DNA from: Ranitomeya imitator
Taxonomy: Eukaryota
Assembly (NCBI RefSeq): GCF_032444005.1
Contig: NC_091291.1
Span: forward strand, 4,154,001 to 4,218,000
Direction of reading: 5' to 3'
DNA length: 64,000 bases
Of this stretch, positions 1 to 29,946 are shown in pieces. The translations under genes and the position numbers were made by a program. Each line of letters starts with the position of its first letter. The first letter of the stretch is position 1. A model generated the notes under the pieces. That model ran no database searches and was not told where the DNA came from. It saw only the letters and a list, made by a program, of their open reading frames with translations.

Positions 1-3000
1 TGCGGGGATAATACAGGAGGTGTAATGTCACACAGGGACCAGCAGAGGGCGGTGCGGGGATAATACAGGAGATGTAATGTCACACAGGGACCAGCAGAGG
101 GCGGTGCGGGGATAATACAGGAGATGTAATGTCACACAGGGACCAGCAGAGGGCGGTGCGGGGATAATACAGGAGGTGTAATGTCACACAGGGACCAGCA
201 GAGGGCGGTGCAGGGATAATACAGGAGGTGTAATGTCACACAGGGACCAGCAGAGGGCGGTGCAGGGATAATACAGGAGATGTAATGTCACACAGGGACC
301 AGCAGAGGGCGGTGCAGGGATAATACAGGAGGTGTAATGTCACACACGGACCAGCAGAGGGCGGTGCGGGGATAATACAGGAGATGTAATGTCACACAGG
401 GACCAGCAGAGGGCGGTGCGGGGATAATACAGGAGGTGTAATGTCACACAGTGACCAGCAGAGGGCGGTGCAGGGATAATACAGGAGATGTAATGTCACA
501 CACGGACCAGCAGAGGGCGGTGCGGGGATAATACAGGAGATGTAATGTCACACAGGGACCAGCAGAGGGCAGTGCGGGGATAATACAGGAGATGTAATGT
601 CACACAGTGACCAGCAGAGGGCAGTGCGGGGATAATACAGGAGATGTAATGTCACACAGGGACCAGCAGAGGGCGGTGCGGGGATAATACAGGAGATGTA
701 ATGTCACACAGTGACCAGCAGAGGGCGGTGCAGGGATAATACAGGAGATGTAATGTCACACACGGACCAGCAGAGGGCGGTGCGGGGATAATACAGGAGA
801 TGTAATGTCACACAGGGACCAGCAGAGGGCAGTGCGGGGATAATACAGGAGATGTAATGTCACACAGTGACCAGCAGAGGGCAGTGCGGGGATAATACAG
901 GAGATGTAATGTCACACAGGGACCAGCAGAGGGCAGTGCAGAAATAATACAGGAGATGTAATGTCACACAGGGACCAGCAGAGGGCGGTGCGGGGATAAT
1001 ACAGATGTAATGTCACACAGGGACCAGCAGAGGGCGGTGCGGGGATAATACAGGAGATGTAATGTCACACAGGGACCAGCAGAGGGCGGTGCGGGGATAA
1101 TACAGGAGGTGTAATGTCACACAGGGACCAGCAGAGGGCGGTGCAGAAATAATACAGGAGATGTAATGTCACACAGGGACCAGCAGAGGGCGGTGCGGGG
1201 ATAATACAGGAGGTGTAATGTCACACAGGGACCAGCAGAGGGCGGTGCAGAAATAATACAGGAGATGTAATGTCACACAGGGACCAGCAGAGGGCGGTGC
1301 GGGGATAATACAGGAGGTGTAATGTCACACAGGGACCAGCAGAGGGCGGTGCGGGGATAATACAGGAGATGTAATGTCACACAGGGACCAGCAGAGGGCA
1401 GTGCGGGGATAATACAGGAGATGTAATGTCACACAGGGACCAGCAGAGGGCGGTGCGGGGATAATACAGGAGGTGTAATGTCACACAGGGACCAGCAGAG
1501 GGCGGTGCGGGGATAATACAGGAGATGTAATGTCACACAGGGACCAGCAGAGAGCAGTGCGGGGATAATACAGGAGATGTAATGTCACACAGGGACCAGC
1601 AGAGGGCGGTGCGGGGATAATACAGGAGATGTAATGTCACACAGGGACCAGCAGAGGGCAGTGCAGAAATAATACAGGAGGTGTAATGTCACACAGGGAC
1701 CAGCAGAGGGCGGTGCGGGGATAATACAGGAGATGTAATGTCACACAGTGACCAGCAGAGGGCAGTGCGGGGATAATACAGGAGATGTAATGTCACACAG
1801 GGACCAGCAGAGGGCGGTGCGGAGATAATACAGGAGATGTAATGTCACACAGGGACCAGCAGAGGGCGGTGCGGGGATAATACAGGAGATGTAATGTCAC
1901 ACAGGGACCAGCAGAGGGCGGTGCGGGGATAATACAGGAGATGTAATGTCACACAGGGACCAGCAGAGGGCGGTGCAGGGATAATACAGGAGGTGTAATG
2001 TCACACAGGGACCAGCAGAGGGCGGTGCAGGGATAATACAGGAGATGTAATGTCACACAGGGACCAGCAGAGGGCGGTGCAGGGATAATACAGGAGGTGT
2101 AATGTCACACAGGGACCAGCAGAGGGCGGTGCAGGGATAATACAGGAGGTGTAATGTCACACACGGACCAGCAGAGGGCGGTGCGGGGATAATACAGGAG
2201 ATGTAATGTCACACAGTGACCAGCAGAGGGCGGTGCAGGGATAATACAGGAGATGTAATGTCACACAGGGACCAGCAGAGGGCGGTGCGGGGATAATACA
2301 GGAGGTGTAATGTCACACAGGGACCAGCAGAGGGCGGTGCGGGGATAATACAGGAGATGTAATGTCACACACGGACCAGCAGAGGGCGGTGCAGGGATAA
2401 TACAGGAGATGTAATGTCACACACGGACCAGCAGAGGGCGGTGCGGGGATAATACAGGAGATGTAATGTCACACAGGGACCAGCAGAGGGCGGTGCGGGG
2501 ATAATACAGGAGATGTCATGTCACACAGGGACCAGCAGAGGGCGGTGCGGGGATAATACAGGAGGTGTAATGTCACACAGTGACCAGCAGAGGGCAGTGC
2601 GGGGATAATACAGGAGATGTAATGTCACACAGTGACCAGCAGAGGGCAGTGCAGAAATAATACAGGAGATGTAATGTCACACAGGGACCAGCAGAGGGCG
2701 GTGCGGGGATAATACAGGAGGTGTAATGTCACACAGGGACCAGCAGAGGGCGGTGCAGAAATAATACAAGAGATGTAATGTCACACAGGGACCAGCAGAG
2801 GGCGGTGCGGGGATAATACAGGAGATGTAATGTCACACAGGGACCAGCAGATGGCGGTGCGGGGATAATACAGGAGGTGTAATGTCACACAGGGACCAGC
2901 AGAGGGCGGTGCGGGGATAATACAGGAGATGTAATGTCACACAGGGACCAGCAGAGGGCGGTGCGGGGATAATACAGGAGATGTAATGTCACACAGTGAC

Positions 3001-6000
3001 CAGCAGAGGGCGGTGCGGGGATAATACAGGAGGTGTAATGTCACACAGGGACCAGCAGAGGGCAGTGCGGGGATAATACAGGAGACGTAATGTCACACAG
3101 GGACCAGCAGAGGGCGGTGCAGAAATAATACAGGAGATGTAATGTCACACAGGGACCAGCAGAGGGCGGTGCAGGGATAATACAGGAGATGTAATGTCAC
3201 ACAGGGACCAGCAGAGGGCGGTGCGGGGATAATACAGGAGGTGTAATGTCACACAGGGACCAGCAGAGGGCGGTGCGGGGATAATACAGGAGATGTAATG
3301 TCACACAGGGACCAGCAGAGGGCGGTGCGGGGATAATACAGGAGATGTAATGTCACACAGGGACCAGCAGAGGGCAGTGCAGAAATAATACAGGAGGTGT
3401 AATGTCACACAGGGACCAGCAGAGGGCGGTGCGGGGATAATACAGGAGACGTAATGTCACACAGGGACCAGCAGAGGGCGGTGCAGAAATAATACAGGAG
3501 ATGTAATGTCACACAGGGACCAGCAGAGGGCGGTGCAGAAATAATACAGGAGATGTAATGTCACACAGGGACCAGCAGAGGGCGGTGCGGGGATAATACA
3601 GGAGGTGTAATGTCACACAGGGACCAGCAGAGGGCGGTGCGGGGATAATACAGGAGATGTAATGTCACACAGGGACCAGCAGAGGGCAGTGCAGAAATAA
3701 TACAGGAGGTGTAATGTCACACAGGGACCAGCAGAGGGCGGTGCGGGGATAATACAGGAGGTGTAATGTCACACAGGGACCAGCAGAGGGCGGTGCGGGG
3801 ATAATACAGGAGATGTAATGTCACACAGGGACCAGCAGAGGGCGGTGCGGGGATAATACAGGAGATGTAATGTCACACAGGGACCAGCAGAGGGCAGTGC
3901 AGAAATAATACAGGAGATGTAATGTCACACACGGACCAGCAGAGGGCAGTGCGGGGATAATACAGGAGGTGTAATGTCACACAGGGACCAGCAGAGGGCG
4001 GTGCAGAAATAATACAGGAGATGTAATGTCACACAGGGACCAGAAGAGGGCGGTGCGGGGATAATACAGGAGATGTAATGTCACACAGGGACCAGCAGAG
4101 GGCGGTGCGGGGATAATACAGGAGATGTAATGTCACACAGGGACCAGCAGAGGGCGGTGCGGAGATAATACAGATGTAATGTCACACAGGGACCAGCAGA
4201 GGGCAGTGCAGAAATAATACAGGAGGTGTAATGTCACACAGGGACCAGCAGAGGGCGGTGCGGGGATAATACAGGAGGTGTAATGTCACACAGGGACCAG
4301 CAGAGGGCGGTGCGGGGATAATACAGGAGGTGTAATGTCACACAGGGACCAGCAGAGGGCGGTGCAGAAATAATACAGGAGATGTAATGTCACACAGGGA
4401 CCAGCAGAGGGCGGTGCGGGGATAATACAGGAGATGTAATGTCACACAGGGACCAGCAGATGGCGGTGCGGGGATAATACAGGAGGTGTAATGTCACACA
4501 GGGACCAGCAGAGGGAGGTGCGGGGATAATACAGGAGATGTAATGTCACACAGGGACCAGCAGAGGGCGGTGCGGGGATAATACAGGAGATGTAATGTCA
4601 CACAGGGACCAGCAGAGGGCGGTGCAGGGATAATACAGGAGATGTAATGTCACACAGGGACCAGCAGAGGGCGGTGCGGGGATAATACAGGAGATGTAAT
4701 GTCACACAGGGACCAGCAGAGGGCGGTGCGGGGATAATACAGGAGATGTAATGTCACACAGGGACCAGCAGAGGGCGGTGCGGGGATAATACAGGAGGTG
4801 TAATGTCACACAGGGACCAGCAGAGGGCGGTGCGGGGATAATACAGGAGATGTAATGTCACACAGGGACCAGCAGAGGGCGGTGCGGGGATAATACAGGA
4901 GATGTAATGTCACACAGGGACCAGCAGAGGGCGGTGCGGGGATAATACAGGAGATGTAATGTCACACAGGGACCAGCAGAGGGCGGTGCGGGGATAATAC
5001 AGGAGATGTAATGTCACACAGGGACCAGCAGAGGGCGGTGCAGAAATAATACAGGAGATGTAATGTCACACAGGGACCAGCAGAGGGCAGTGCAGAAATA
5101 ATACAGGAGGTGTAATGTCACACAGGGACCAGCAGAGGGCGGTGCGGGGATAATACAGGAGACGTAATGTCACACAGGGACCAGCAGAGGGCGGTGCAGA
5201 AATAATACAGGAGATGTAATGTCACACAGGGACCAGCAGAGGGCAGTGCAGAAATAATACAGGAGGTGTAATGTCACACAGGGACCAGCAGAGGGCGGTG
5301 CGGGGATAATACAGGAGGTGTAATGTCACACAGGGACCAGCAGAGGGCGGTGCGGGGATAATACAGGAGATGTAATGTCACACAGGGACCAGCAGAGGGC
5401 AGTGCAGAAATAATACAGGAGATGTAATGTCACACAGGGACCAGCAGAGGGCGGTGCGGGGATAATACAGGAGATGTAATGTCACACAGGGACCAGCAGA
5501 GGGCGGTGCGGGGATAATACAGGAGGTGTAATGTCACACAGGGACCAGCAGAGGGCGGTGCGGGGATAATACAGGAGATGTAATGTCACACAGGGACCAG
5601 CAGAGGGCGGTGCGGGGATAATACAGGAGATGTAATGTCACACAGGGACCAGCAGAGGGCAGTGCAGAAATAATACAGGAGATGTAATGTCACACAGGGA
5701 CCAGCAGAGGGCAGTGCAGAAATAATACAGGAGATGTAATGTCACACAGGGACCAGCAGAGGGCAGTGCAGAAATAATACAGGAGATGTAATGTCACACA
5801 GGGACCAGCAGAGGGCGGTGCGGGGATAATACAGGAGGTGTAATGTCACACAGGGACCAGCAGAGGGCAGTGCGGGGATAATACAGGAGATGTAATGTCA
5901 CACAGGGACCAGCAGAGGGCAGTGCAGAAATAATACAGGAGATGTAATGTCACACAGGGACCAGCAGAGGGCGGTGCGGAGATAATACAGATGTAATGTC

Positions 6001-9000
6001 ACACAGGGACCAGCAGAGGGCAGTGCAGAAATAATACAGGAGATGTAATGTCACACAGGGACCAGCAGAGGGCGGTGCGGGGATAATACAGGAGGTGTAA
6101 TGTCACACAGGGACCAGCAGAGGGCGGTGCGGGGATAATACAGGAGATGTAATGTCACACAGGGACCAGCAGAGGGCAGTGCAGAAATAATACAGGAGAT
6201 GTAATGTCACACAGGGACCAGCAGAGGGCGGTGCAGAAATAATACAGGAGATGTAATGTCACACAGGGACCAGCAGAGGGCGGTGCAGAAATAATACAGG
6301 AGGTGTAATGTCACACAGGGACCAGCAGAGGGCGGTGCGGGGATAATACAGGAGATGTAATGTCACACAGGGACCAGCAGAGGGCGGTGCGGGGATAATA
6401 CAGGAGATGTAATGTCACACAGGGACCAGCAGAGGGCGGTGCGGGGATAATACAGGAGATGTAATGTCACACACGGACCAGCAGAAGGCGGTGCAGAAAT
6501 AATACAGGAGATGTAATGTCACACAGGGACCAGCAGAGGGCGGTGCGGAGATAATACAGGAGGTGTAATGTCACACAGGGACCAGCAGAGGGCGGTGCAG
6601 AAATAATACAGGAGATGTAATGTCACACAGGGACCAGCAGAGGGCGGTGCGGGGATAATACAGGAGGAGTAATGTCACACAGGGACCAGCAGAGGGCGGT
6701 GCAGAAATAATACAGGAGGTGTAATGTCACACAGGGACCAGCAGAGGGCGGTGCGGGGATAATACAGGAGATGTAATGTCACACAGGGACCAGCAGAGGG
6801 CAGTGCGGGGATAATACAGGAGGTGTAATGTCACACAGGGACCAGCAGAGGGCGGTGCGGGGATAATACAGGAGATGTAATGTCACACAGGGACCAGCAG
6901 AGGGCAGTGCGGGGATAATACAGGAGATGTAATGTCACACAGGGACCAGCAGAGGGCAGTGCGGGGATAATACAGGAGGTGTAATGTCACACAGGGACCA
7001 GCAGAGGGCGGTGCGGGGATAATACAGGAGATGTAATGTCACACAGGGACCAGCAGAGGGCGGTGCGGGGATAATACAGGAGACGTAATGTCACACAGGG
7101 ACCAGCAGAGGGCGGTGCAGAAATAATACAGGAGATGTAATGTCACACACGGACCAGCAGAGGGTGGTGCAGAAATAATACAGGAGATGTAATGTCACAC
7201 ACGGACCAGCAGAGGGTGGTGCAGAAATAATACAGGAGATGTAATGTCACACAGGGACCAGCAGAGGGCGGTGCGGGATAATACAGGAGGTGTAATGTCA
7301 CACAGGGACCAGCAGAGGGCAGTGCAGAAATAATACAGGAGATGTAATGTCACACAGGGACCAGAAGAGGGCGGTGCGGGGATAATACAGGAGATGTAAT
7401 GTCACACAGGGACCATCAGAGGGCGGTGCGGGGATAATACAGGAGATGTAATGTCACACAGGGACCAGCAGAGGGCGGTGCAGGGATAATACAGGAGATA
7501 TAATGTCACACAGGGACCAGCAGAGGGCAGTGCGGGGATAATACAGGAGATGTAATGTCACACAGGGACCAGCAGAGGGCGGTGCGGGGATAATACAGGA
7601 GATGTAATGTCACACAGGGACCAGCAGAGGGCGGTGCAGAAATAATACAGGAGGTGTAATGTCACACAGGGACCAGCAGAGGGCGGTGCGGGGATAATAC
7701 AGGAGATGTAATGTCACACAGGGACCAGCAGAGGGCGGTGCGGGGATAATACAGGAGACGTAATGTCACACAGGGACCAGCAGAGGGCGGTGCAGAAATA
7801 ATACAGGAGATGTAATGTCACACAGGGACCAGCAGAGGGCAGTGCAGAAATAATACAGGAGATGTAATGTCACACAGGGACCAGCAGAGGGCGGTGCGGG
7901 GATAATACAGGAGATGTAATGTCACACAGGGACCAGCAGAGGGCAGTGCGGGGATAATACAGGAGATGTAATGTCACACAGGGACCAGCAGAGGGCGGTG
8001 CGGGGATAATACAGGAGATGTAATGTCACACAGTGACCAGCAGAGGGCGGTGCGGGGATAATACAGGAGATGTAATGTCACACAGGGACCAGCAGAGGGC
8101 GGTGCGGGGATAATACAGGAGGTGTAATGTCACACAGGGACCAGCAGAGGGCGGTGCGGGGATAATACAGGAGATGTAATGTCACACAGGGACCAGCAGA
8201 GGGCGGTGCGGGGATAATACAGGAGATGTAATGTCAAACACGGACCAGCAGAGGGCGGTGCAGAAATAATACAGGAGATGTAATGTCACACAGGGACCAG
8301 CAGAGGGCAGTGCAGAAATAATACAGGAGATGTAATGTCACACAGGGACCAGCAGAGGGCGGTGCGGGGATAATACAGGAGATGTAATGTCACACAGGGA
8401 CCAGCAGAGGGCGGTGCAGAAATAATACAGGAGGTGTAATGTCACACAGGGACCAGCAGAGGGCGGTGCGGGGATAATACAGGAGATGTAATGTCACACA
8501 GGGACCAGCAGAGGGCGGTGCGGGGATAATACAGGAGACGTAATGTCACACAGGGACCAGCAGAGGGCGGTGCAGAAATAATACAGGAGATGTAATGTCA
8601 CACAGGGACCAGCAGAGGGCAGTGCAGAAATAATACAGGAGATGTAATGTCACACAGGGACCAGCAGAGGGCGGTGCGGGGATAATACAGGAGATGTAAT
8701 GTCACACAGGGACCAGCAGAGGGCGGTGCGGGGATAATACAGGAGGTGTAATGTCACACAGGGACCAGCAGAGGGCGGTGCGGGGATAATACAGGAGATG
8801 TAATGTCACACAGGGACCAGCAGAGGGCGGTGCGGGGATAATACAGGAGATGTAATGTCACACACGGACCAGCAGAGGGCGGTGCAGAAATAATACAGGA
8901 GATGTAATGTCACACAGGGACCAGCAGAGGGCGGTGCGGGGATAATACAGGAGATGTAATGTCACACACGGACCAGCAGAGGGTGGTGCAGAAATAATAC

Positions 9001-12000
9001 AGGAGATGTAATGTCACACAGGGACCAGCAGAGGGCGGTGCGGGGATAATACAGGAGATGTAATGTCACACAGGGACCAGCAGAGGGCGGTGCGGGAATA
9101 ATACAGGAGATGTAATGTCACACAGGGACCAGCAGAGGGCGGTGCAGAAATAATACAGGAGATGTAATGTCACACAGGGACCAGCAGAGGGCAGTGCAGA
9201 AATAATACAGGAGATGTAATGTCACACAGGGACCAGCAGAGGGCGGTGCGGGGATAATACAGGAGATGTAATGTCACACAGGGACCAGCAGAGGGCGGTG
9301 CGGGGATAATACAGGAGGTGTAATGTCACACAGGGACCAGCAGAGGGCGGTGCGGGGATAATACAGGAGATGTAATGTCACACAGGGACCAGCAGAGGGC
9401 GGTGCGGGGATAATACAGGAGATGTAATGTCACACACGGACCAGCAGAGGGCGGTGCAGAAATAATACAGGAGATGTAATGTCACACAGGGACCAGCAGA
9501 GGGCGGTGCGGGGATAATACAGGAGATGTAATGTCACACAGGGACCAGCAGAGGGCGGTGCAGAAATAATACAGGAGATGTAATGTCACACAGGGACCAG
9601 CAGAGGGCAGTGCAGGGATAATACAGGATATATAATGTCACACAGGGACCAGCAGAGGGCGGTGCAGAAATAATACAGGAGATGTAATGTCACACACGGA
9701 CCAGCAGAGGGCGGTGCAGAAATAATACAGGAGATGTAATGTCACACAGGGACCAGCAGAGGGCGGTGCGGGGATAATACAGGAGATGTAATGTCACACA
9801 GGGACCAGCAGAGGGCGGTGCAGGGATAATACAGGAGATGTAATGTCACACAGGGACCAGCAGAGGGCGGTGCGGGGATAATACAGGAGATGTAATGTCA
9901 CACAGGGACCAGCAGAGGGCGGTGCAGGGATAATACAGGAGATATAATGTCACACAGGGACCAGCAGAGGGCGGTGCAGAAATAATACAGGAGATGTAAT
10001 GTCACACACGGACCAGCAGAGGGCGGTGCAGAAATAATACAGGAGATGTAATGTCACACAGGGACCAGCAGAGGGCGGTGCGGAGATAATACAGGAGGTG
10101 TAATGTCACACAGGGACCAGCAGAGGGCGGTGCGGGGATAATACAGGAGATGTAATGTCACACAGGGACCAGCAGAGGGCGGTGCGGGGATAATACAGGA
10201 GACGTAATGTCACACAGGGACCAGCAGAGGGCGGTGCAGAAATAATACAGGAGATGTAATGTCACACACGGACCAGCAGAGGGCGGTGCAGAAATAATAC
10301 AGGAGATGTAATGTCACACAGGGACCAGCAGAGGGCGGTGCAGAAATAATACAGGAGATGTAATGTCACACAGGGACCAGCAGAGGGCGGTGCGGGGATA
10401 ATACAGGAGATGTAATGTCACACAGGGACCAGCAGAGGGCGGTGCGGGGATAATACAGGAGGTGTAATGTCACACAGGGACCAGCAGAGGGCGGTGCGGG
10501 GATAATACAGGAGACGTAATGTCACACAGGGACCAGCAGAGGGCGGTGCAGAAATAATACAGGAGATGTAATGTCACACACGGACCAGCAGAGGGCGGTG
10601 CAGAAATAATACAGGAGATGTAATGTCACACAGGGACCAGCAGAGGGCGGTGCGGGGATAATACAGGAGATGTAATGTCACACAGGGACCAGCAGAGGGC
10701 GGTGCAGAAATAATACAGGAGATGTAATGTCACACAGGGACCAGCAGAGGGCAGTGCAGAAATAATACAGGAGATGTAATGTCACACAGGGACCAGCAGA
10801 GGGCGGTGCGGGGATAATACAGGAGGTGTAATGTCACACAGGGACCATCAGAGGGCGGTGCGGGGATAATACAGGAGATGTAATGTCACACAGGGACCAG
10901 CAGAGGGCGGTGCGGGGATAATACAGGAGATGTAATGTCACACAGGGACCAGCAGAGGGCGGTGCGGGGATAATACAGGAGATGTAATGTCACACAGGGA
11001 CCAGCAGAGGGCAGTGCAGAAATAATACAGGAGGTGTAATGTCACACAGGGACCAGCAGAGGGCGGTGCGGGGATAATACAGGAGGTGTAATGTCACACA
11101 GGGACCAGCAGAGGGCGGTGCGGGGATAATACAGGAGATGTAATGTCACACAGGGACCAGCAGAGGGCGGTGCGGGGATAATACAGGGGATGTAATGTCA
11201 CACAGGGACCAGCAGAGGGCGGTGCGGGGATAATACAGGAGATGTAATGTCACACAGGGACCAGCAGAGGGCGGTGCGGGGATAATACAGGAGATGTAAT
11301 GTCACACAGGGACCAGCAGAGGGCGGTGCAGAAATAATACAGGAGGTGTAACGTCACACAGGGACCAGCAGAGGGCGGTGCGGGGATAATACAGGAGGTG
11401 TAATGTCACACAGGGACCAGCAGAGGGCGGTGCGGGGATAATACAGGAGATGTAATGTCACACAGGGACCAGCAGAGGGCGGTGCGGGGATAATACAGGA
11501 GGTGTAATGTCACACAGGGACCAGCAGAGGGCAGTGCGGGGATAATACAGGAGATGTAATGTCACACAGGGACCAGCAGAGGGCGGTGCAGGGATAATAC
11601 AGGAGATATAATGTCACACAGGGACCAGCAGAGGGCGGTGCGGGGATAATACAGGAGATGTAATATCACACAGGGACCAGCAGAGGGCGGTGCAGAAATA
11701 ATACAGGAGATGTAATGTCACACAGGGACCAGCAGAGGGCGGTGCAGGGATAATACAGGAGATATAATGTCACACAGGGACCAGCAGAGGGCGGTGCGGG
11801 GATAATACAGGAGATGTAATGTCACACAGGGACCAGCAGAGGGCGGTGCAGAAATAATACAGGAGGTGTAATGTCACACAGGGACCAGCAGAGGGCGGTG
11901 CAGAAATAATACAGGAGATGTAATGTCACACAGGGACCAGCAGAGGGCGGTGCAGGGATAATACAGGAGATATAATGTCACACAGGGACCAGCAGAGGGC

Positions 12001-15000
12001 AGTGCGGGGATAATACAGGAGATGTAATGTCACACACGGACCAGCAGAGGGCGGTGCGGGGATAATACAGATGTAATGTCACACAGGGACCAGCAGAGGG
12101 CGGTGCAGAAATAATACAGGAGGTGTAATATCACACAGGGACCAGCAGAGGGCGGTGCAGAAATAATACAGGAGATGTAATGTCACACAGGGACCAGCAG
12201 AGGGCGGTGCAGGGATAATACAGGAGATATAATGTCACACAGGGACCAGCAGAGGGCAGTGCGGGGATAATACAGGAGATGTAATGTCACACACGGACCA
12301 GCAGAGGGCGGTGCGGGGATAATACAGGAGGTGTAATGTCAGACAGGGACCAGCAGAGGGCGGTGCGGGGATAATACAGGAGATGTAATGTCACACAGGG
12401 ACCAGCAGAGGGCGGTGCGGGGATAATACAGGAGATGTAATGTCACACAGGGACCAGCAGAGGGCGGTGCGGGGATAATACAGGAGATGTAATGTCACAC
12501 AGGGACCAGCAGAGGGCGGGGATAATACAGGAGATGTAATGTCACACAGGGACCAGCTGAGGGCGGTGCAGAAATAATACAGGAGATGTAATGTCACACA
12601 GTGACCAGCAGAGGGCGGTGCGGGGATAATACAGATGTAATGTCACACAGGGACCAGCAGAGGGCGGTGCGGGGATAATACAGGAGATGTAATGTCACAC
12701 AGGGACCAGCAGAGGGCGGTGCGGGGATAAAACAGGAGATGTAATGTCACACATGGACCAGCAGAGGGCAGTGCGGGGATAATACAGGAGGTGTAATGTC
12801 ACACAGGGACCAGCAGAGGGCGGTGCGGGGATAATACAGGAGGTGTAATGTCACACAGGGACCAGCAGAGGGCGGTGCGGGGATAAAACAGGAGGTGTAA
12901 TGTCACACAGGGACCAGCAGAGGGCGGTGCGGGGATAATACAGGAGATGTAATGTCACATAGGGACCAGCAGAGGGCGGTGCGGGGATAATACAGGAGAT
13001 GTAATGTCACACAGGGACCAGCAGAGGGCGGTGCGGGGATAATACAGGAGATGTAATGTCACACAGGGACCAGCAGAGGGCGGTGCAGGGATAATACAGG
13101 AGGTGTAATGTCACACAGGGACCAGCAGAGGGCGGTGCGGGGATAATACAGGAGATGTAATGTCACACAGTGAGCAGCAGAGGGCGGTGCGGGGATAATA
13201 CAGATGTAATATCACACAGGGACCAGCAGAGGGCGGTGCGGGGATAATACAGGAGATGTAATGTCACACAGGGACCAGCAGAGGGCGGTGCAGGGATAAT
13301 ACAGGAGGTGTAATATCACACAGGGACCAGCAGAGGGCGGTGCGGGGATAATACAGATGTAATGTCACACAGGGACCAGCAGAGGGCGGTGCGGGGATAA
13401 TACAGATGTAATGTCACACAGGGACCAGCAGAGGGCAGTGCAGGGATAATACAGGAGATGTAATGTCACACAGGGACCAGCAGAGGGCAGTGCAGGGATA
13501 ATACAGGAGATGTAATGTCACACAGTGACCAGCAGAGGGCGGTGCAGGGATAATACAGGAGATGTAATGTCACACAGTGACCAGCAGAGGGCGGTGCAGG
13601 GATAATACAGGAGATGTAATGTCACACACGGACCAGCAGAGGGCGGTGCGGGGATAATACAGGAGATATAATGTCACACAGGGACCAGCAGAGGGCGGTG
13701 CAGAAATAATACAGGAGATGTAATGTCACACAGGGACCAGCAGAGGGCGGTGCAGAAATAATACAGGAGATGTAATGTCACACAGGGACCAGCAAAGGGC
13801 GGTGCGGAGATAATACAGGAGGTGTAATGTCACACAGGGACCAGCAGAGGGCGGTGCGGAGATAATACAGGAGGTGTAATGTCACACAGGGACCAGCAGA
13901 GGGCGGTGCAGAAATAATACAGGAGGTGTAATGTCACACAGGGACCAGCAGAGGGCGGTGCGGGGATAATACAGGAGATGTAATGTCACACAGGGACCAG
14001 CAGAGGGCGGTGCAGAAATAATACAGGAGGTGTAATGTCACACAGGGACCAGCAGAGGGCGGTGCGGGGATAATACAGGAGATGTAATGTCACACAGGGA
14101 CCAGCAGAGGGCGGTGCAGGGATAATACAGGAGATGTAATGTCACACAGGGACCAGCAGAGGGCGGTGCGGGGATAATACAGGAGATGTAATGTCACACA
14201 GGGACCAGCAGAGGGCGGTGCGGGGATAATACAGGAGGTGTAATGTCACACAGGGACCAGCAGAGGGCGGTGCGGGGATAATACAGGAGATATAATGTCA
14301 CACAGGGACCAGCAGAGGGCGGTGCAGAAATAATACAGGAGATGTAATGTCACACACGGACCAGCAGAGGGCGGTGCAGAAATAATACAGGAGATGTAAT
14401 GTCACACAGGGACCAGCAGAGGGCGGTGCGGAGATAATACAGGAGGTGTAATGTCACACAGGGACCAGCAGAGGGCGGTGCGGAGATAATACAGGAGGTG
14501 TAATGTCACACAGGGACCAGCAGAGGGCGGTGCAGAAATAATACAGGAGATGTAATGTCACACACGGACCAGCAGAGGGCGGTGCAGAAATAATACAGGA
14601 GATGTAATGTCACACACGGACCAGCAGAGGGCGGTGCAGAAATAATACAGGAGATGTAATGTCACACAGGGACCAGCAGAGGGCGGTGCGGAGATAATAC
14701 AGGAGGTGTAATGTCACACAGGGACCAGCAGAGGGCGGTGCGGAGATAATACAGGAGGTGTAATGTCACACAGGGACCAGCAGAGGGCGGTGCGGAGATA
14801 ATACAGGAGGTGTAATGTCACACAGGGACCAGCAGAGGGCGGTGCGGGGATAATACAGGAGATGTAATGTCACACAGGGACCAGCAGACGGCGGTGCGGA
14901 GATAATACAGATGTAATGTCACACAGGGACCAGCAGAGGGCGGTGCGGGGATAATACAGGAGGTGTAATGTCACACAGGGACCAGCAGAGGGCGGTGCAG

Positions 15001-18000
15001 AAATAATACAGGAGGTGTAATGTCACACAGGGACCAGCAGAGGGCGGTGCGGGGATAATACAGGAGATGTAATGTCACACAGGGACCAGCAGAGGGCGGT
15101 GCGGGGATAATACAGGAGATGTAATGTCACACAGGGACCAGCAGAGGGCGGTGCAGAAATAATACAGGAGGTGTAATGTCACACAGGGACCAGCAGAGGG
15201 CGGTGCGGGGATAATACAGGAGATGTAATGTCACACAGGGACCAGCAGAGGGCGGTGCGGGGATAATACAGGAGATGTAATGTCACACAGGGACCAGCAG
15301 AGGGCGGTGCGGGGATAATACAGGAGGTGTAATGTCACACAGGGACCAGCAGAGGGCAGTGCGGGGATAATACAGGAGATGTAATGTCACACAGGGACCA
15401 GCAGAGGGCGGTGCAGAAATAATACAGGAGGTGTAATGTCACACAGGGACCAGCAGAGGGCGGTGCGGGGATAATACAGGAGATGTAATGTCACACAGGG
15501 ACCAGCAGAGGGCGGTGCGGGGATAATACAGGAGGTGTAATGTCACACAGGGACCAGCAGAGGGCGGTGCAGAAATAATACAGGAGGTGTAATGTCACAC
15601 AGGGACCAGCAGAGGGCGGTGCGGGGATAATACAGGAGATGTAATGTCACACAGGGACCAGCAGAGGGCGGTGCGGGGATAATACAGGAGATGTAATGTC
15701 ACACAGGGACCAGCAGAGGGCGGTGCAGGGATAATACAGGAGGTGTAATATCACACAGGGACCAGCAGAGGGCGGTGCGGGGATAATACAGGAGATGTAA
15801 TGTCACACAGGGACCAGCAGAGGGCAGTGCGGGGATAATACAGGAGATGTAATGTCACACAGGGACCAGCAGAGGGCGGTGCGGGGATAATACAGGAGAT
15901 GTAATGTCACACAGGGACCAGCAGAGGGCGGTGCAGGGATAATACAGGAGGTGTAATGTCACACAGGGACCAGCAGAGGGCGGTGCAGAAATAATACAGG
16001 AGGTGTAATGTCACACAGCGACCAGCAGAGGGCGGTGCGGGGATAATACAGGAGATGTAATGTCACACAGGGACCAGCAGAGGGCGGTGCAGAAATAATA
16101 CAGGAGGTGTAATGTCACACAGGGACCAGCAGAGGGCGGTGCGGGGATAATACAGGAGATGTAATGTCACACAGGGACCAGCAGAGGGCGGTGCAGGGAT
16201 AATACAGGAGATGTAATGTCACACAGGGACCAGCAGAGGGCGGTGCAGGGATAATACAGGAGATGTAATGTCACACAGGGACCAGCAGAGGGCGGTGCGG
16301 GGATAATACAGGAGGTGTAATGTCACACAGGGACCAGCAGAGGGCGGTGCAGAAATAATACAGGAGGTGTAATGTCACACAGGGACCAGCAGAGGGCGGT
16401 GCGGGGATAATACAGGAGATGTAATGTCACACAGGGACCAGCAGAGGGCGGTGCAGAAATAATACAGGAGGTGTAATGTCACACAGGGACCAGCAGAGGG
16501 CGGTGCGGGGATAATACAGGAGATGTAATGTCACACAGGGACCAGCAGAGGGCGGTGCAGGGATAATACAGGAGGTGTAATATCACACAGGGACCAGCAG
16601 AGGGCGGTGCGGGGATAATACAGGAGATGTAATGTCACACAGGGACCAGCAGAGGGCAGTGCGGGGATAATACAGGAGATGTAATGTCACACAGGGACCA
16701 GCAGAGGGCAGTGCGGGGATAATACAGGAGATGTAATGTCACACAGGGACCAGCAGAGGGCGGTGCGGGGATAATACAGGAGATGTAATGTCACACAGGG
16801 ACCAGCAGAGGGCGGTGCGGGGATAATACAGGAGGTGTAATGTCACACAGGGACCAGCAGAGGGCGGTGCGGGGATAATACAGGAGATGTAATGTCACAC
16901 AGGGACCAGCAGAGGGCAGTGCGGAGATAATACAGGAGATGTAATGTCACACAGGGACCAGCAGAGGGCGGTGCGGGGATAATACAGGAGATGTAATGTC
17001 ACACAGGGACCAGCAGAGGGCGGTGCGGGGATAATACAGGAGATGTAATGTCACACAGGGACCAGCAGAGGGCGGTGCGGGGATAATACAGGAGATGTAA
17101 TGTCACACAGGGACCAGCAGAGGGCGGTGCGGGGATAATACAGGAGATGTAATGTCACACAGGGACCAGCAGAGGGCGGTGCAGAAATAATACAGGAGAT
17201 ATAATGTCACACAGGGACCAGCAGAGGGCAGTGCGGGGATAATACAGGAGGTGTAATGTCACACAGAGACCAGCAGAGGGCAGTGCAGAAATAATACAGG
17301 AGGTGTAATGTCACACAGGGACCAGCAGAGGGCAGTGCGGGGATAATACAGGAGGTGTAATATCACACAGGGACCAGCAGAGGGCGGTGCGGGGATAATA
17401 CAGGAGGTGTAATGTCACACAGGGACCAGCAGAGGGCGGTGCGGGGATAATACAGGAGGTGTAATGTCACACAGGGACCAGCAGAGGGCGGTGCGGGGAT
17501 AATACAGGAGATATAATGTCACACAGGGACCAGCAGAGGGCAGTGCGGGGATAATACAGGAGGTGTAATGTCACACAGAGACCAGCAGAGGGCGGTGCGG
17601 GGATAATACAGGAGATGTAATGTCACACAGGGACCAGCAGAGGGCGGTGCGGGGATAATACAGGAGATGTAATGTCACACAGAGACCAGCAGAGGGCGGT
17701 GCGGGGATAATACAGGAGATGTAATGTCACACAGTGACCAGCAGAGGGCAGTGCGGGGATAATACAGGAGATGTAATGTCACACAGGGACCAGCAGAGGG
17801 CGGTGCAGAAATAATACAGGAGGTGTAATGTCACACAGGGACCAGCAGAGGGCGGTGCAGGGATAATACAGGAGGTGTAATGTCACACAGAGACCAGCAG
17901 AGGGCGGTGCGGGGATAATACAGGAGATGTAATGTCACACAGGGACCAGCAGAGGGCGGTGCGGGGATAATACAGGAGATGTAATGTCACACAGGGACCA

Positions 18001-18574
18001 GCAGAGGGCGGTGCGGGGATAATACAGGAGGTGTAATGTCACACATGGACCAGCAGAGGGCGGTGCGGGGATAATACAGGAGATGTAATGTCACACAGGG
18101 ACCAGCAGAGGGCGGTGCGGGGATAATACAGGAGATGTAATGTCACACAGGGACCAGCAGAGGGCGGTGCGGGGATAATACAGATGTAATGTCACACAGG
18201 GACCAGCAGAGGGCGGTGCGGGGATAATACAGGAGATGTAATGTCACACAGGGACCAGCAGAGGGCGGTGCGGGGATAATACAGGAGATGTAATGTCACA
18301 CAGGGACCAGCAGAGGGCGGTGCGGGGATAATACAGGAGATGTAATGTCACACAGGGACCAGCAGAGGGCGGGGATAATACAGGAGATGTAATGTCACAC
18401 AGGGACCAGCAGAGGGCGGTGCGGGGATAATACAGGAGATGTAATGTCACACAGGGACCAGCAGAGGGCGGTGCGGGGATAATACAGGAGGTGTAATATC
18501 ACACAGGGACCAGCAGAGGGCGGTGCGGGGATAATACAGATGTAATATCACACAGTGAGCAGCAGAGGGCGGTG
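1..18574 (+). repeat. 52-bp minisatellite, ~355 copies, continuing past the left edge; lies in CPLANE2 intron 1. Consensus TGCGGGGATAATACAGGAGATGTAATGTCACACAGGGACCAGCAGAGGGCGG
   Basis: TGCGGGG recurs at 1, 53 and 105 (period 52). The array is uninterrupted up to ...GGGCGGTG at 18574. Occasional 49-bp (GAG deleted) and 47-bp units. Confidence 0.99.
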
Positions 18575-18584
18575 TCTTAGTTAC

Positions 18585-18702
18585 CGTACGTTCTCCGCTT
18601 CCTCTTGCGCAGGACACAGGTCAGATAGTCGCGGCCTTCCGGTGACTGCAGCCAGTCCGGTGTGATCAGACTGTCGGGTTTGCGCACAGGAATCTTGGAC
18701 AT
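18585..18702 (-). CDS. CPLANE2: First coding exon of CPLANE2/RSG1 (ciliogenesis and planar polarity effector 2, atypical small GTPase)
   Basis: Manual translation gives MSKIPVRKPDSLITPDWLQSPEGRDYLTCVLRKRKRRTY+G. This matches the human RSG1 N-terminus as recalled (VPNWHESAEGKEYLACILRKNRRRVFG). ATG at 18702, donor G|GTAACT at 18585/18584. Position downstream of FBXO42 on the same strand matches human synteny. Not in the ORF track because it is short. Confidence 0.9.
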
Positions 18703-18763
18703 GTTACCGTTCACACATCCGAGACGCTGCTGTATAAGGACTAGGAGAGCTGTCGCAGGAAAA

Positions 18764-18864
18764 TGACGTCAGCAGTAAGACTCACGTGAATAAGCTGCAC
18801 GAGTCACGTGATACGCAGTTGTCCGTTACGGCCACGCCCATTAAAGTAAACGAGCGTTACGTCA
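18764..18864. promoter_or_regulatory. Putative CPLANE2 proximal promoter: CRE palindrome, two CACGTG E-boxes and a CRE-like TTACGTCA
   Basis: TGACGTCA 18764-18771; CACGTG 18783-18788 and 18805-18810 (GTCACGTGAT context); TTACGTCA 18857-18864. These lie 60-160 bp upstream of the ATG in CpG-rich sequence. The TSS is not visible. Confidence 0.6.
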
Positions 18865-19055
18865 GGCGTCCTGTGTCACCTCCATGTTTTTGCTCCCGCT
18901 GTCACCTCATGTCTCCGCACTGGGAGCCGCTAGTAATGTGACCGCCGTGCAGAAATAATGGAGACCACACGCCGCTGGCCCCTCCCCCCATACTCTACTG
19001 CCCGTCACCCCACAGGCTTATGACACACACACCCTGCACCTAACCTCCCGCTATT
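18779..19055. repeat. Upstream module, copy 1 (~277 bp direct repeat)
   Basis: Runs GACTCACGTGAATAAGCTGCACGAG...CTATT. Near-identical to 20977-21257 with only a few substitutions and small indels. Confidence 0.95.
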
Positions 19056-23309: not shown

Positions 23310-24353
23310 TTATCTCTTGGCTCTTACGAAATACAAGGCGTTGGTTTTGGGGTAATATTTCATGTTCTGTTTTTTGTCCATGAGACCCCCAAAAATAATG
23401 AGTTCCCCTCGGCCTTGCACGACCGTGTGCAGACTGGTCTCGGGGGGTCCCACCACAGAGCTATTGCTGAACACCTTCCATTTTACTCGGCCCCGTTCGC
23501 GGGGCCCCTGAATGTCCAAGGCGTACATCTGCATGGGTTTGCAGTTCATGCTCTGATATAAGGGCTTCCCCACATTCAGCGACTGGGGCGGGTGATGTCC
23601 TAGACGACGGGCGATGGTAGGCAGGGAATGGCCGTCACTCTGGGCCGGGGCGGGCCGTGCTGAGGCGGCTTCCGAGCCGCTGCTGGGAGATCCTGGGGAG
23701 GTGAGGGTGGGAGGGCTGACGGGGTTAGCGGCCACCTGGGATGAGGATGTGACCAGGGCACGAACAGCTTCCAGACCCCGCCGAAGGGCCCCAGGCGACA
23801 CCGCTCCAGACAGCGTGGACGTAATGTGCGGGGGCGTGTGCACGCCATTGGTCAGTTCAGGGGGGTTTCTACTTGCAGGGTCCAGATCTAAGTCCCCCCG
23901 TTTCCATGTGCAATCCTCCGCACCGAGACATAAATCCTTCTGCTCCGGCAGAGACCCCCGGCGTGGAGGAGGAATGGGGGCTGCCTTATGTTCACAGCTG
24001 TCAGCAGCAGAGGGAGAAGTCACCGGCAAGGGGCTGTCCATGGCTGCCGCCGGTGATATACTGCCCCCATTAAGGACAGGAGACAGACCATCGCTCCTGG
24101 CGGGGGAGAGGCTGCCCTCGCGGGAACTACCTCCGGTCTGCCGTGGGGGCCGGGGCCTGAGAGTTCCCCAGCGGCCATTCACACAAGGGGCTTCATCAGG
24201 CGCTCGCACCGGGGAGTGTGATCGGTATTCTCTGGTCTCCGGTGCCAGGGCAGGTGGAGTCGCACTGATCGGGGACGGACGGGAATTCAAGCTTGGACTG
24301 AGAGGAGCGCGGCCGCTGGGCGCCTGGCTGAACACCACCACACACTGGCCGAC
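23310..24353 (-). CDS. FBXO42: FBXO42 last coding exon ([20 protein letters not shown]...[10 protein letters not shown])
   Basis: ORF 23310..24341 matches the FBXO42 C-terminus. Acceptor CAG|GTC at 24354/24353. Length 1044 nt, phase 0. Confidence 0.98.
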
Positions 24354-24431
24354 CTGTGAGGGATGGAGGAAACGTGGTCACCATTCTGGGCTCAGCGAGC
24401 GAGACGTCCTGCAGGCCTCAGGGGCACTTAC

Positions 24432-24548
24432 CCTACAAGCCGGGTGGCACCACAGCTCCGGGGCTCCGTGCTCCTCATTTTCCACCTTCAGCTGCTGCCA
24501 GGTCCAGGGGCTCGTGTTCATGTGCAGGAGCCAGGCGTCCTTAAAGAG
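24432..24548 (-). CDS. FBXO42: FBXO42 coding exon 8 ([39 protein letters not shown])
   Basis: 117 nt, AG acceptor, GTAAGT donor; Kelch-region sequence recognised. Confidence 0.96.
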
Positions 24549-24622
24549 CTGAAACCAGAAACGTTCCTGCAGTCAGTGACACGGACACGGGGTGCTACAC
24601 GGGCCGGGACACGGCCACTCAC

Positions 24623-24679
24623 CGCATTGGGTCCTCCGCAGCCGCCCAGGATCAGGATCGTCTCGCTGTCAATCACTAT
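24623..24679 (-). CDS. FBXO42: FBXO42 coding exon 7 (IVIDSETILILGGCGGPNA)
   Basis: 57 nt, CAG acceptor, GTGAGT donor. Confidence 0.96.
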
Positions 24680-24752
24680 CTGTACGAGGGACAGAATCAG
24701 GTTATGTTCCCGCGTGACCCAATGTGAGGGGAGGACATGACGCCGAGCGTAC

Positions 24753-24849
24753 CTGGGACTGTCCTCCGCGGGGGTGCGGGCAGGGACCCGAGATGTTGGG
24801 CTTGGACCACGACCACTGCTCCATGTCGAGCACCCAGACATCACTACTC
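24753..24849 (-). CDS. FBXO42: FBXO42 coding exon 6 ([32 protein letters not shown])
   Basis: 97 nt, CCTTCCAG acceptor, GTACGC donor; phases 2 to 0 fit the neighbouring exons. Confidence 0.96.
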
Positions 24850-25549
24850 CTGGAAGGCAAGATCATTCTTATGCATCTACGGGTGACATCTTGGGCCACA
24901 TTCACACTAGTGAAGAGCTCCGGTGAGGTCTAATGGACAAACGTCCGACCACTTTCCATCTGTGTCCTTCAGACTTCTCTATTGTGTCCAGTAAAGAAGG
25001 ACTGATGGTAATGAGTGCGCACGTCTCCATCATGGGACCTGGTCGCGGGTGACGTGTACTGGACACCGGCTCCAGGAATGAAGAGAATGGCCCCGTGACG
25101 AGATTCCCAGCGCTCTGCTGCAGTGTGAACGTGGCCTTCCTGTCGCCTCTTTCACCTCCGATCCGTCCTCTGCGAAGAGCCGCTCTTCCCCGGTGAGTCG
25201 TCTCCCTGGAGAGCAGCGGACGGATCGCAGGGGAAAGAACTAAAAGATAAAAACCACGAGAAGCCGTCACATTATGGCCTCCGGTCACATAACAGAGCGC
25301 AACTGGGTGGCTAATGGGGCGAGACAATGTTTGATGGTACGAAGACCACCCATGCAGCCAGGGCCCATGAGGTCTAGGGGGCAAAAGGGCCGACAAATTG
25401 GGGTATCTAAATCCAACAGTATTAAGACAAAGCTAGCAGCGAAAAGGTCCTAAAAACACATGTAGAGGACACCATGGAGGAGGCCTCATGGGCATCGCCA
25501 ACATCCGAGGCCCGGTGACGCGGCTGCTCTGGGCAGGTGTGTGGCGCCG

Positions 25550-25635
25550 GGGCAGTCACGGCGGCTCTGGGTCAGTCAGGTGGTGGCGCTGGGGCAGTCA
25601 CAGTGGCTCTGGGTCAGTCAGGTGGTGGCGCTGGG
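25550..25635 (+). repeat. 42-bp tandem duplication (2 copies), intronic
   Basis: GGGCAGTCAC..GGCTCTGGGTCAGTCAGGTGGTGGCGCTG occurs twice. Confidence 0.8.
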
Positions 25636-25703
25636 CAGGTGCGTGGCCCTGGGAAGGTCACTGCGGCTCTAAATGCGATTGTTCGTGTGGCCGTGGTCTA
25701 TAC

Positions 25704-25865
25704 CAGAGGTCCCCAACTCCAGTCCTCAAGGCCCACCAACAGGTCATGTTTTCAGGATTTCCTTTGCATTGCACAGGTGATGCAATTATTACCTGGGCAA
25801 GACTAAGGAAATCCTGAAAACATGACATGTTGGTGGGCCTTGAGGACTGGAGTTGGGGACCCCTG
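25704..25865. mobile_element. 162-bp non-autonomous hAT-superfamily MITE
   Basis: 61-bp terminal inverted repeats starting CAG(A/G)GGTCCCCAACTCCAGTCCTCAAGG, with 2 mismatches. Perfect 8-bp target-site duplication GTCTATAC at 25696-25703 and 25866-25873; an 8-bp TSD is the hAT hallmark. Confidence 0.92.
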
Positions 25866-26074
25866 GTCTATACTATGAAGACGCCGTCTGGTACAAACTA
25901 TGTGTGTTTTATCCATTAAACCCTATCCACCTACTAGTCCATCCTGATTGTGCGGACCCCTGCGGACCCCACCAGGGAGGGATTTCTGTATGCGCCTCTC
26001 TTGTTTATGTGTCTCCCCCATGCTGTTGGCCACACCCCGACATTGGTATCGTAGGTGAACACAAAGTCATCTTA

Positions 26075-26257
<183 letters not shown>

Positions 26258-26260
26258 TTA

Positions 26261-27771
<1,511 letters not shown>

Positions 27772-27848
27772 TTAACGACGCCAGAATCACAGCACCGCGA
27801 GCAGCTGAGCGAAGGCAATTACATCTACACATCGTGTCCAAGGGAAAT

Positions 27849-28687: not shown

Positions 28688-29946
<1,259 letters not shown>

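Follow-up and report, generated by a model that had tools for sequence, protein, structure and literature searches.

The 64-kb window of Ranitomeya imitator DNA analysed here includes the start of a cilia gene, CPLANE2 (RSG1), and a long array of predicted sites for CTCF, a genome-folding protein. Both protein-coding genes considered here lie on the minus strand, with FBXO42 upstream of CPLANE2. The coding exons of FBXO42 span 23313..35421, from the first (35421-35176) to the last (24341-23313), and were assigned from PDB 9o04_C and from the Pfam F-box and Kelch domains. The F-box exon at 35421-35176 matched FBXO42 in PDB 9o04_C (E = 4e-20), and the protein is 100% identical to Ranitomeya imitator FBXO42 isoform X1. 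The coding part of CPLANE2 exon 1 occupies 18585..18702, with the ATG at 18702, and was assigned from PDB 7q3e_D and tblastn orthologues. Its 39 codons at 18702-18586 matched residues 8-36 of PDB 7q3e_D, annotated as "Ciliogenesis and planar polarity effector 2" (E = 2.8e-6), and orthologous CPLANE2 exon 1 sequences were located with tblastn in five frog loci; a protein search with the 41-residue exon-1 peptide returned no candidate. The 5′ flank of CPLANE2 (18703..19032, minus strand) was characterized by CpG counts and by the direct repeats D5 and D6, and part of it (18779-19032) has a second copy at 20977-21231. CPLANE2 intron 1 opens with just 10 nt that do not belong to the repeat (18575..18584, minus strand, donor GT at 18584-18583), identified from sequence and translation; the array follows from intron position +11. 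The array thus lies inside CPLANE2 intron 1, where the original prediction had placed it.

Tandem Repeats Finder called a single array at 1-18574 on the plus strand, antisense to CPLANE2, with a period of 52, 358.0 copies, 95% matches and 0% indels; motif counts and per-position variation delimit the same 358-unit minisatellite. Because the array continues past the left edge of the window, 18.6 kb and 358 copies are lower bounds, in agreement with the expected stretch of at least 18.5 kb of 52-bp monomers with one site per 52 bp. One consensus unit lies at 53..104 and, according to the sequence, a gap scan and alignment A1, contains a TGTAAT box at 73-78, where zinc fingers 9-11 of CTCF would be positioned. 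The 14-nt CTCF core of this unit follows at 91-104, after a 9-nt gap behind the 9-mer at 73-81 (all plus strand). Among 357 units there are 74 distinct unit types, and the variant units are arranged as a mosaic; a search for a higher-order repeat within the R. imitator array found none. Homogeneous units, a mosaic of variants and a copy number that shifts among species and assemblies make this a recombination-driven minisatellite. No relatives of the unit were found elsewhere in the 64-kb window, and scans of the window with Rfam (gathering score) and for tRNAs gave no matches. Satellite sequence makes up about 77% of the window.

The core CCASYAGRKGGCRS is exact in 343 of the 358 units, and the other 15 are off by one base. 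Three variants account for the exact cores: CCAGCAGAGGGCGG (286 units), a form ending in ...GCAG (55 units) and CCAGCAGATGGCGG (two units). All 343 lie on the plus strand, as do the 15 near matches, and no exact core was found on the minus strand or elsewhere in the 64 kb, which bears out the prediction of about 355 co-oriented CTCF-type sites. The flanking bases are also as anticipated, with TG directly after the core in 341 of 343 units and TGA directly before it in 14 units. The chance of an exact core in a random 52-mer on either strand is about 2.5e-5 at uniform base frequencies and about 3.7e-5 at the unit's own base composition, and an exact core arose in 6 of 200,000 shuffles. The R. 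imitator core is identical at 13 of 14 positions to CCAGCAGAGGGCGC, a sequence that CTCF occupies at every human instance and binds in gel-shift assays (PMC6101590). By its match to the core consensus, each such unit would carry a putative CTCF site, and the arrays of four other frog species likewise match CCASYAGRKGGCRS.

Upstream of the core, TGTAATGTC begins at the predicted distance of 18 nt in 313 of 343 units. Of the 8 specified positions of the TGCAGTNCC-type upstream motif it shares 5, and some units of Eleutherodactylus coqui and Pyxicephalus share 6, so that the frog box departs from the TGCAGTNCC consensus at 2-3 positions and is non-canonical. The 9-nt gap between the R. imitator box and the CCA of the core is the best among gaps of 2-13, and was equated with a "6-bp spacing" by calibration on the IL3 +2.9 site in PMC12885311. 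Canonical spacing of the upstream motif is 5-6 bp from the 19-bp core, that is, a gap of 8-9 nt to CCA. Among lineages the gap ranges from 7 to 10 nt and is 7 nt in three species. The claim that these are full-length sites with an upstream motif for zinc fingers 9-11 is favored by the canonical spacing in R. imitator and by the invariance of TGTAAT, but its sequence component is matched at only 5 of 8 positions. A reading in which the upstream box is too distant from the core was dropped after the spacing had been calibrated on the IL3 site. Read on the sense strand of CPLANE2, the core appears as a pyrimidine-rich stretch followed by AUUACA.

CTCF of frogs recognizes the vertebrate motif, with the same convergent orientation at domain borders (PMC8270788, PMC10760524), and the end at which loops are anchored is the 3′ one, on the side of the CTCF N-terminus (PMC10760524). 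In the array this 3′ end is oriented toward both the CPLANE2 promoter and FBXO42, which confirms the unidirectional arrangement originally proposed. A search around FBXO42 in the loci compared found no conserved CTCF site that could serve as a convergent partner. Literature searches found no paper linking CTCF with CPLANE2 (RSG1), and none in the full-text library searched that prints any of four substrings of the unit.

CPLANE2 intron 1 also starts with a homologous array, built of 48-55-bp units, in Eleutherodactylus coqui, Pristimantis, Engystomops and Pyxicephalus, and alignment A1 shows the units of the five frogs to be homologous. Ranitomeya and two Engystomops units are alone in having a period of 52 bp, with 48-55 bp elsewhere; outside the core, the R. 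imitator unit is 84% identical to these two Engystomops units. Promoter-side units are antisense to CPLANE2 in all five array-bearing species. In the four hyloid frogs the first core is reached 7-16 nt into the intron, and in Pyxicephalus at 57 nt. Copy number varies 30-fold among array-bearing species, from about 10 in Pyxicephalus through about 37 in Engystomops and at least 37 in E. coqui to at least 358 in R. imitator, and CPLANE2 intron 1 of Spea bombifrons contains no array. In Engystomops the array makes up 97% of intron 1; a block of 22 units in its middle is inverted and retains the motif, so that orientation is mixed, and two Engystomops assemblies contain 20 and 36 exact cores. Because its relatives have about 10-40 units and the CPLANE2 gene model of Dendrobates tinctorius is only 2.7 kb, the 358-copy state looks like a lineage-specific expansion and not a conserved requirement. 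At a bird locus EPHA2 follows FBXO42 and CPLANE2 exon 1 was not found; in X. laevis and Dendropsophus, exon 1 was not found within 10 kb of FBXO42, and the X. laevis locus examined contained no relatives of the unit. Record coordinates place the locus at a distance of about 1 Mb from the end of a chromosome in Pyxicephalus, Spea and X. laevis.

Conservation between species is concentrated in the two parts of the unit that CTCF would contact. Between-species identity is 90% in the core and 100% in the TGTAAT box, which is invariant across the five frog species, and 53% in the rest of the unit. Ten diverged Pyxicephalus units show a similar pattern (core 0.72, box 0.77, rest 0.44), in which the conservation of the core is partly circular since the units were picked by the core, and not by the box. 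Among the 31 six-column windows upstream of the core in these units, the box ranks first. Relative to the hyloid core, the Pyxicephalus consensus is changed at the degenerate positions S4, K9 and S14 alone, in each case to an allowed base. Within arrays, common-variant positions are absent from the box and from the invariant core positions in three species, with P = 0.094, 0.018 and 0.163 in tests that are individually weak; in the R. imitator array alone the lower variability of the core is not significant (P = 0.094). Taken across species, the conservation supports real constraint on both predicted CTCF modules. Since the conserved parts at this intron position are limited to these two modules, a working CTCF element is probable.

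CpG content bears on whether such sites would be occupied. The only CpG of the core is at positions 12-13, where methylation barely affects CTCF binding, and the core reads CCAGCAG, without a CpG at the methylation-sensitive positions 2-3, so that the site is predicted to be insensitive to methylation. For this reason constitutive methylation, which had been proposed as grounds for rejecting CTCF binding, is a weak refutation. The ratio of observed to expected CpG is 0.48 in the array vs 0.98 over 18575-19032 (exon 1, the 5′ flank and 10 intron nt), and CG-to-CA variants are present at the two CpGs of the unit in 35% and 15% of units, which suggests germline methylation. From the low CpG ratio together with these variants, the array may be methylated or silent. 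Full occupancy is implausible, because nucleosomes could not fit into 18 kb of DNA with CTCF bound every 52 bp. Human alpha-satellite higher-order repeats, which are enriched in CTCF motifs, gave no significant DiMeLo-seq signal (bioRxiv 10.64898/2026.07.18.739380).

The explanation that we favor, and to which we give an about even chance, is that the array belongs to an old cluster of tandem, full-length predicted CTCF sites that fills most of CPLANE2 intron 1 in neobatrachians and has been maintained by selection; judged by its sequence pattern, it probably functions as a CTCF element and did not arise as a repeat by mere chance. Each 48-55-bp unit would offer a 14-nt core to zinc fingers 3-7 and, 7-10 nt upstream, a TGTAAT box to zinc fingers 9-11. 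Unequal exchange and gene conversion would homogenize the units within a species and alter their number, with selection preserving only the two CTCF-contact modules. CTCF may sit on a shifting subset of the units. In the promoter-side block its N-terminus would face the CPLANE2 promoter and FBXO42, so that cohesin arriving from that side would be stalled, giving a redundant one-sided loop anchor or boundary just after exon 1. The tenfold expansion in Ranitomeya would then most likely be neutral overshoot in a satellite-prone genome. The absence of the array in Spea, the 30-fold range of copy number and the mixed orientation in Engystomops count against any function that is essential or fixed.

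A neutral minisatellite would account for many of the same observations. Under this explanation a chance CTCF site was duplicated and kept by unequal crossing-over, the array is mostly methylated and nucleosomal, and CTCF is irrelevant to it. Tandem arrays make up 10.67% of the X. tropicalis genome and correlate with recombination rate (PMC10794172), and the R. imitator window is itself largely satellite. The variation in copy number between species and between the two Engystomops assemblies, the unit mosaic without a higher-order repeat, the visible CpG decay and the unbound state of CTCF-motif-rich human alpha satellite (bioRxiv 10.64898/2026.07.18.739380) would all be expected. However, concerted evolution acts on whole units, and would leave unexplained why only the core and TGTAAT survive in the ten Pyxicephalus units, why two blocks have 90-100% identity against 53% elsewhere, and why changes in the core are confined to degenerate positions and allowed bases. 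The array also persists at one intron across the hyloid-ranoid split. On this balance we consider a purely neutral origin and maintenance unlikely, if still a serious contender.

Two other explanations concern the source of the unit and the factor that reads it. The unit could derive from a dispersed transposon or SINE family carrying a CTCF site, which would concern its origin only and would be compatible with CTCF binding; the array at CPLANE2 would then be one among many expansions of that family. A candidate is the 52-bp minisatellite derived from the 3′ tail of SINE2-1_XT, which has 41,014 copies in X. tropicalis and gave 46 BLAST hits in E. pustulosus (PMC10794172); the CPLANE2 array of Engystomops has about 37 units, and the density of CTCF motifs in X. 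tropicalis correlates with recombination rate (r = 0.54). The comparison is by period alone, though, and 52 bp is not the general period of these arrays; relatives of the unit are absent from the rest of the window and from the X. laevis locus, and the intron, start and orientation shared by five species point to a single origin at the CPLANE2 locus, which makes a dispersed source improbable. Even less probable, in our estimation, is that the conserved blocks serve a role other than CTCF binding, as an intronic RNA signal on the sense strand of CPLANE2 or as a site for a different zinc-finger protein. Such a role would fit an array that begins beside the splice donor and fills nearly all of intron 1, as in Engystomops, and whose sense-strand RNA in R. 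imitator has one AG in 18.5 kb. The scarcity of AG follows from a unit without CT, however, with a chance near 0.3 by rough estimate. The tolerated substitutions track the degeneracy of CTCF itself, the second conserved block is at the position of zinc fingers 9-11, and a chicken 5′HS4 EMSA probe has ATGTAT at the matching place (PMC12885311). The 22-unit inversion in Engystomops would destroy a strand-specific RNA signal and spare a DNA site, and its retention of the motif fits a DNA-binding factor better.

As a predicted tandem array of CTCF sites, the frog locus can be compared with several known systems. DXZ4, FIRRE and ICCE on the mammalian X are likewise tandem and variable in copy number, with a CTCF motif in each unit, and ICCE and DXZ4 are described as related through conserved CTCF motifs (PMC6125249). 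Between species their motif stays conserved and the remainder of the unit changes, a pattern that the frog array follows. Their units, however, measure hundreds to thousands of bases and have a single site, whereas the frog unit of 48-55 bp contains little beyond its site. The frog array is autosomal in context, intronic and at most 16 nt from a splice donor, and CTCF binding to it is predicted, unlike that of the bound DXZ4-type repeats. With 343 sites in 18.6 kb, or about 18,500 per Mb, it is denser than the densest human repeat class reported, which has 5,023 per Mb (bioRxiv 10.64898/2026.07.18.739380). The human subtelomeric 61-mer forms short tandem arrays of minisatellite scale with CTCF and cohesin peaks (PMC4032850), and the frog locus resembles it in lying near a chromosome end in Pyxicephalus, Spea and X. 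laevis. These have 2-7 copies, compared with 10 to at least 358 in frogs, and they adjoin telomere repeats and TERRA promoters, whereas the frog array is in a first intron; the two sequences are unrelated.

The two-part layout of the frog unit is that of sites of the chicken beta-globin 5′HS4 (FII) type, in which a core and an upstream element for zinc fingers 9-11 are joined by a linker bridged by zinc finger 8. The HS4 probe has ATGTAT from 18 nt before the core (PMC12885311), and the frog units have (A/G)TGTAAT at -16 to -19. Insulation is better with CTCF sites that carry an upstream motif and with sites repeated in tandem. Sites of the 5′HS4 type are single or engineered in 2-4 copies, however, and the frog array is natural, with tens to hundreds. 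Clusters at mammalian boundaries and waves of rodent SINE B2 likewise gain sites by copying motif-bearing sequence, and the redundancy of clustered sites has been proposed to stabilize boundaries (PMC6945661, PMC10982698). SINE B2 spreads by retrotransposition to new loci, whereas the frog array would have grown by tandem amplification in place, with concerted evolution of its units.

A broader possibility, which we regard as rather doubtful, is that the array is a CTCF minisatellite kept by selection for more than 100 million years, an age that we take from anuran timetrees, and that it is maybe the best anchored of a genome-wide set of frog "CTCF satellites", perhaps including the 41,014-copy 52-mer of X. 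tropicalis. If such a class existed, tandem amplification, and not retrotransposition, would be a main route to new CTCF sites in frogs. Known tandem repeats bearing CTCF sites have large units and occupy few mammalian loci. The array differs in that its repeat unit is essentially one complete predicted CTCF site and fills nearly a whole intron beside a promoter. It is also held at one place across distant frog families, with conservation limited to bases that CTCF would contact. Standard ChIP-seq pipelines discard multi-mapping reads, so that existing CTCF maps of frogs would lack such arrays. Work on how site number and orientation affect boundary strength has until now relied on engineered arrays of 2-4 sites, and frogs offer a natural copy series at one orthologous position, with 0, about 10, about 37 (including an inverted block) and at least 358 units.

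The tandem array at window positions 1-18574 has a period of 52 bp and comprises 358.0 copies (95% matches, 0 indels), with the motif on the + strand. Because the window opens mid-array at base 1, 18574 bp and 358 copies are lower bounds, and the true array may be longer. Scanning the whole 64 kb for the exact 14-nt CTCF core consensus CCASYAGRKGGCRS returned 343 matches, every one on the + strand, with none on the - strand and none outside the array. Fifteen other units carry a core that is one base off the consensus, in line with the roughly 355 co-oriented cores of the original prediction. The flanks it described were also recovered: TG lies directly 3' of the core in 341/343 units, TGA directly 5' in 14, and TGTAATGTC begins 18 nt 5' in 313/343. 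An exact core is expected on either strand of a random 52-mer with P ~3e-5, and was present in 6 of 200,000 shuffled units. Core density in the array is ~18,500 per Mb, versus 5,023 CTCF sites per Mb in the densest repeat class of a human telomere-to-telomere survey (bioRxiv 10.64898/2026.07.18.739380). The array, its position and its orientation are real.

Placement in CPLANE2 intron 1, near FBXO42, was likewise borne out. The coding part of CPLANE2 exon 1 (18702-18586, minus strand) comprises 39 codons, and their translation matches CPLANE2 residues 8-36 (PDB 7q3e_D, E = 2.8e-6). The exon ends at 18585 and is followed by a donor GT at 18584-18583, which makes the first array base intron position +11. 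Upstream on the same strand lies FBXO42, encoding F-box and Kelch domains, whose first exon matches PDB 9o04_C (E = 4e-20). Two FBXO42 exons tested were 100% identical to the R. imitator FBXO42 isoform X1 protein, and 94% and 80% identical to that of Dendrobates tinctorius, which identifies the sequence as R. imitator DNA. The CpG observed/expected ratio is 0.98 across exon 1 and its 5' flank (18575-19032) versus 0.48 in the array. The 255 bp just 5' of exon 1 (18779-19032), which hold two CACGTG boxes, recur 2.2 kb upstream at 20977-21231 (97-99% identity) without exon 1; C-rich low-complexity repeats separate the two copies, and a second such block lies beyond the upstream one. The + strand of the array contains CT once and TT never, so over 18.5 kb the CPLANE2-sense intron RNA lacks AA and has a single AG, leaving cryptic 3' splice sites nearly absent. 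Their scarcity is probably just a by-product of unit composition.

Searches with the last FBXO42 exon and then with a full-length match recovered frog FBXO42 proteins, whose loci were taken with 10-kb flanks; CPLANE2 sits just downstream of FBXO42. In Eleutherodactylus coqui (L002, exon 1 at 34393-34503), 55-bp units begin at 34519, with at least 37 units continuing past the locus end. An inserted 515-bp element (L002:36223-36736), bounded by ~16-nt terminal inverted repeats, splits this array in two. In Pristimantis euphronides (L003, exon 1 to 34819), the first core lies 7 nt into the intron, and four diverged units are in view before the locus ends. Engystomops pustulosus (L008, exon 1 to 28593; second assembly L007) has 48-bp units, of which 7 are antisense, 22 inverted and 8 antisense; exon 2 follows ~45 nt past the last unit, and the array makes up 97% of the intron. 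Its inverted middle block (motifs antisense, sense, antisense relative to the gene) is seen at L008:28935-29966 and L007:47273-48483. Exact cores number 36 in one assembly versus 20 in the other, which could be copy-number polymorphism or assembly quality. The ranoid Pyxicephalus adspersus (L005, exon 1 to 24315) has ten diverged units, all antisense, in a 905-bp intron, including three exact cores and four with one mismatch. Intron 1 of Spea bombifrons (L006, exon 1 to 18855) is ~157 bp long and contains no array, and the annotated CPLANE2 model of D. tinctorius spans just 2.7 kb. Promoter-side units are antisense to CPLANE2 in every array-bearing species, R. imitator included. By record coordinates, FBXO42-CPLANE2 lies ~1 Mb from the chromosome end in Pyxicephalus, Spea and X. 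laevis (L004), a position within the long, recombination-rich subtelomeres described in frogs.

An alignment of 11 units from the five array-bearing species could be made along the full unit length. Outside the core, the R. imitator unit shares 84% identity with two distal 52-bp Engystomops units, which in turn share just 76% with the predominant 48-bp type of that species. The 52-bp subtype is therefore older than the split of these lineages, and the array was inherited rather than reinvented; it is orthologous across five neobatrachian frogs. The hyloid-ranoid split dates to more than 100 million years ago. Invariant columns are confined to the core, the part of a CTCF site contacted by zinc fingers 3-7, and to a TG.AA box (TGTAAT) at the position of zinc fingers 9-11. 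When each species is represented by a single unit, the core is 90% identical (126/140), the box 100% (60/60) and the remainder of the unit 53% (153/289). Among the Pyxicephalus units, which are no longer homogenised and were chosen by their core, without use of the box, mean pairwise identity is 0.72 in the core, 0.77 in the box and 0.44 in the rest, and the box is the best conserved of 31 six-column windows 5' of the core. Their consensus core reads CCACCAGATGGCGC and departs from the hyloid CCAGCAGAGGGCRG at degenerate positions 4, 9 and 14 alone, where each change is to the alternative permitted base. In the arrays of R. imitator, E. coqui and Engystomops, variants above 5% are absent from the box and from all eight core positions that are invariant (P = 0.094, 0.018 and 0.163, respectively; ~0.01 combined in our own calculation by Fisher's method). 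Conservation follows both modules through which CTCF contacts DNA, and the degeneracy of the CTCF motif.

The array core differs only at its last base, a degenerate position, from CCAGCAGAGGGCGC, which gives a CTCF gel shift in vitro and is occupied by CTCF at every human instance (PMC6101590). The spacing of the upstream element was calibrated on a published site. The IL3 +2.9 site is printed as CTGCAGTTTC, an 8-nt gap and CCACTAG (PMC12885311), so the published "5-bp" and "6-bp" spacings leave 8 nt and 9 nt, respectively, before CCA. The R. imitator upstream 9-mer has a 9-nt gap to CCA, the top match among gaps of 2-13, and agrees with the consensus at just 5/8 specified positions. Since we estimate such a match to be a ~5% chance event, the R. 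imitator sequence alone makes an unconvincing case for this element. The chicken 5'HS4 probe has ATGTAT at the place matching the frog box (PMC12885311). Box start positions are -18 or -19 for Ranitomeya and Pyxicephalus and -16 for the remaining three species, all covered by the reported range of CTCF linker lengths.

CTCF is predicted to bind the array units, and the cluster may provide redundant, one-sided blocking of cohesin that approaches from the direction of the promoter and FBXO42. Insulation in reporter systems is stronger with tandem copies and with the upstream motif. It is implausible that every site would be filled at a spacing of 52 bp, and occupancy is expected to be partial and variable. 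Human alpha satellites rich in CTCF motifs show no detectable CTCF binding (bioRxiv 10.64898/2026.07.18.739380). Absence of the array in Spea and the presence of both orientations in Engystomops also call for caution, and no conserved convergent partner CTCF site was found in the fetched frog loci. A CTCF-like site with two mismatches (TCAGTAGGAGGCGC, 37158-37171, minus strand) lies upstream of the FBXO42 promoter and is convergent with the array; no equivalent is conserved in the other frogs looked at. CG-to-CA variants at the two unit CpGs (35% and 15% of units), together with the intermediate CpG ratio, suggest that the array is methylated in the germline. CTCF is sensitive to methylation at core positions 2-3 only and insensitive at position 12 (PMC6222495, PMC5694663). 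The sole CpG of the array core is at positions 12-13, so methylation would not alone block binding. Satellites abound in the R. imitator genome. The array's 358 copies are most readily interpreted as the product of expansion through unequal exchange.

The array would work in the manner of DXZ4, FIRRE and ICCE, tandem repeats that carry CTCF sites, and of the human subtelomeric 61-mer and clustered boundary CTCF sites. It differs from all of these in unit size and density, the unit itself being the site, in its intronic position adjoining a promoter, and in being traceable by orthology through frog families, among which copy number varies widely. Our literature search found no paper on the CPLANE2 intron-1 array. 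A link to the Xenopus SINE2-1_XT 52-mer is conceivable. For that repeat, PMC10794172 gives 41,014 copies in X. tropicalis and 46 hits in E. pustulosus; the latter figure is close to the ~37 CPLANE2 units.

Rfam reported no family at gathering score across the whole window, which holds several other repeats. A 42-bp satellite, C-rich on the + strand, covers at least 23 kb (40781-64000) and continues past the right edge; it is nearly CpG-free (observed/expected 0.01) and contains no CTCF-like core. Directly upstream of FBXO42 exon 1 is a 33-bp array (36372-37072; 79% GC, CpG observed/expected 1.1), followed by a 38-bp C-rich array of ~77 copies (37329-40326). FBXO42 introns hold two arrays of a 72/75-bp unit, at 28971-29946 (13.6 copies) and 31053-34777 (50.5 copies).
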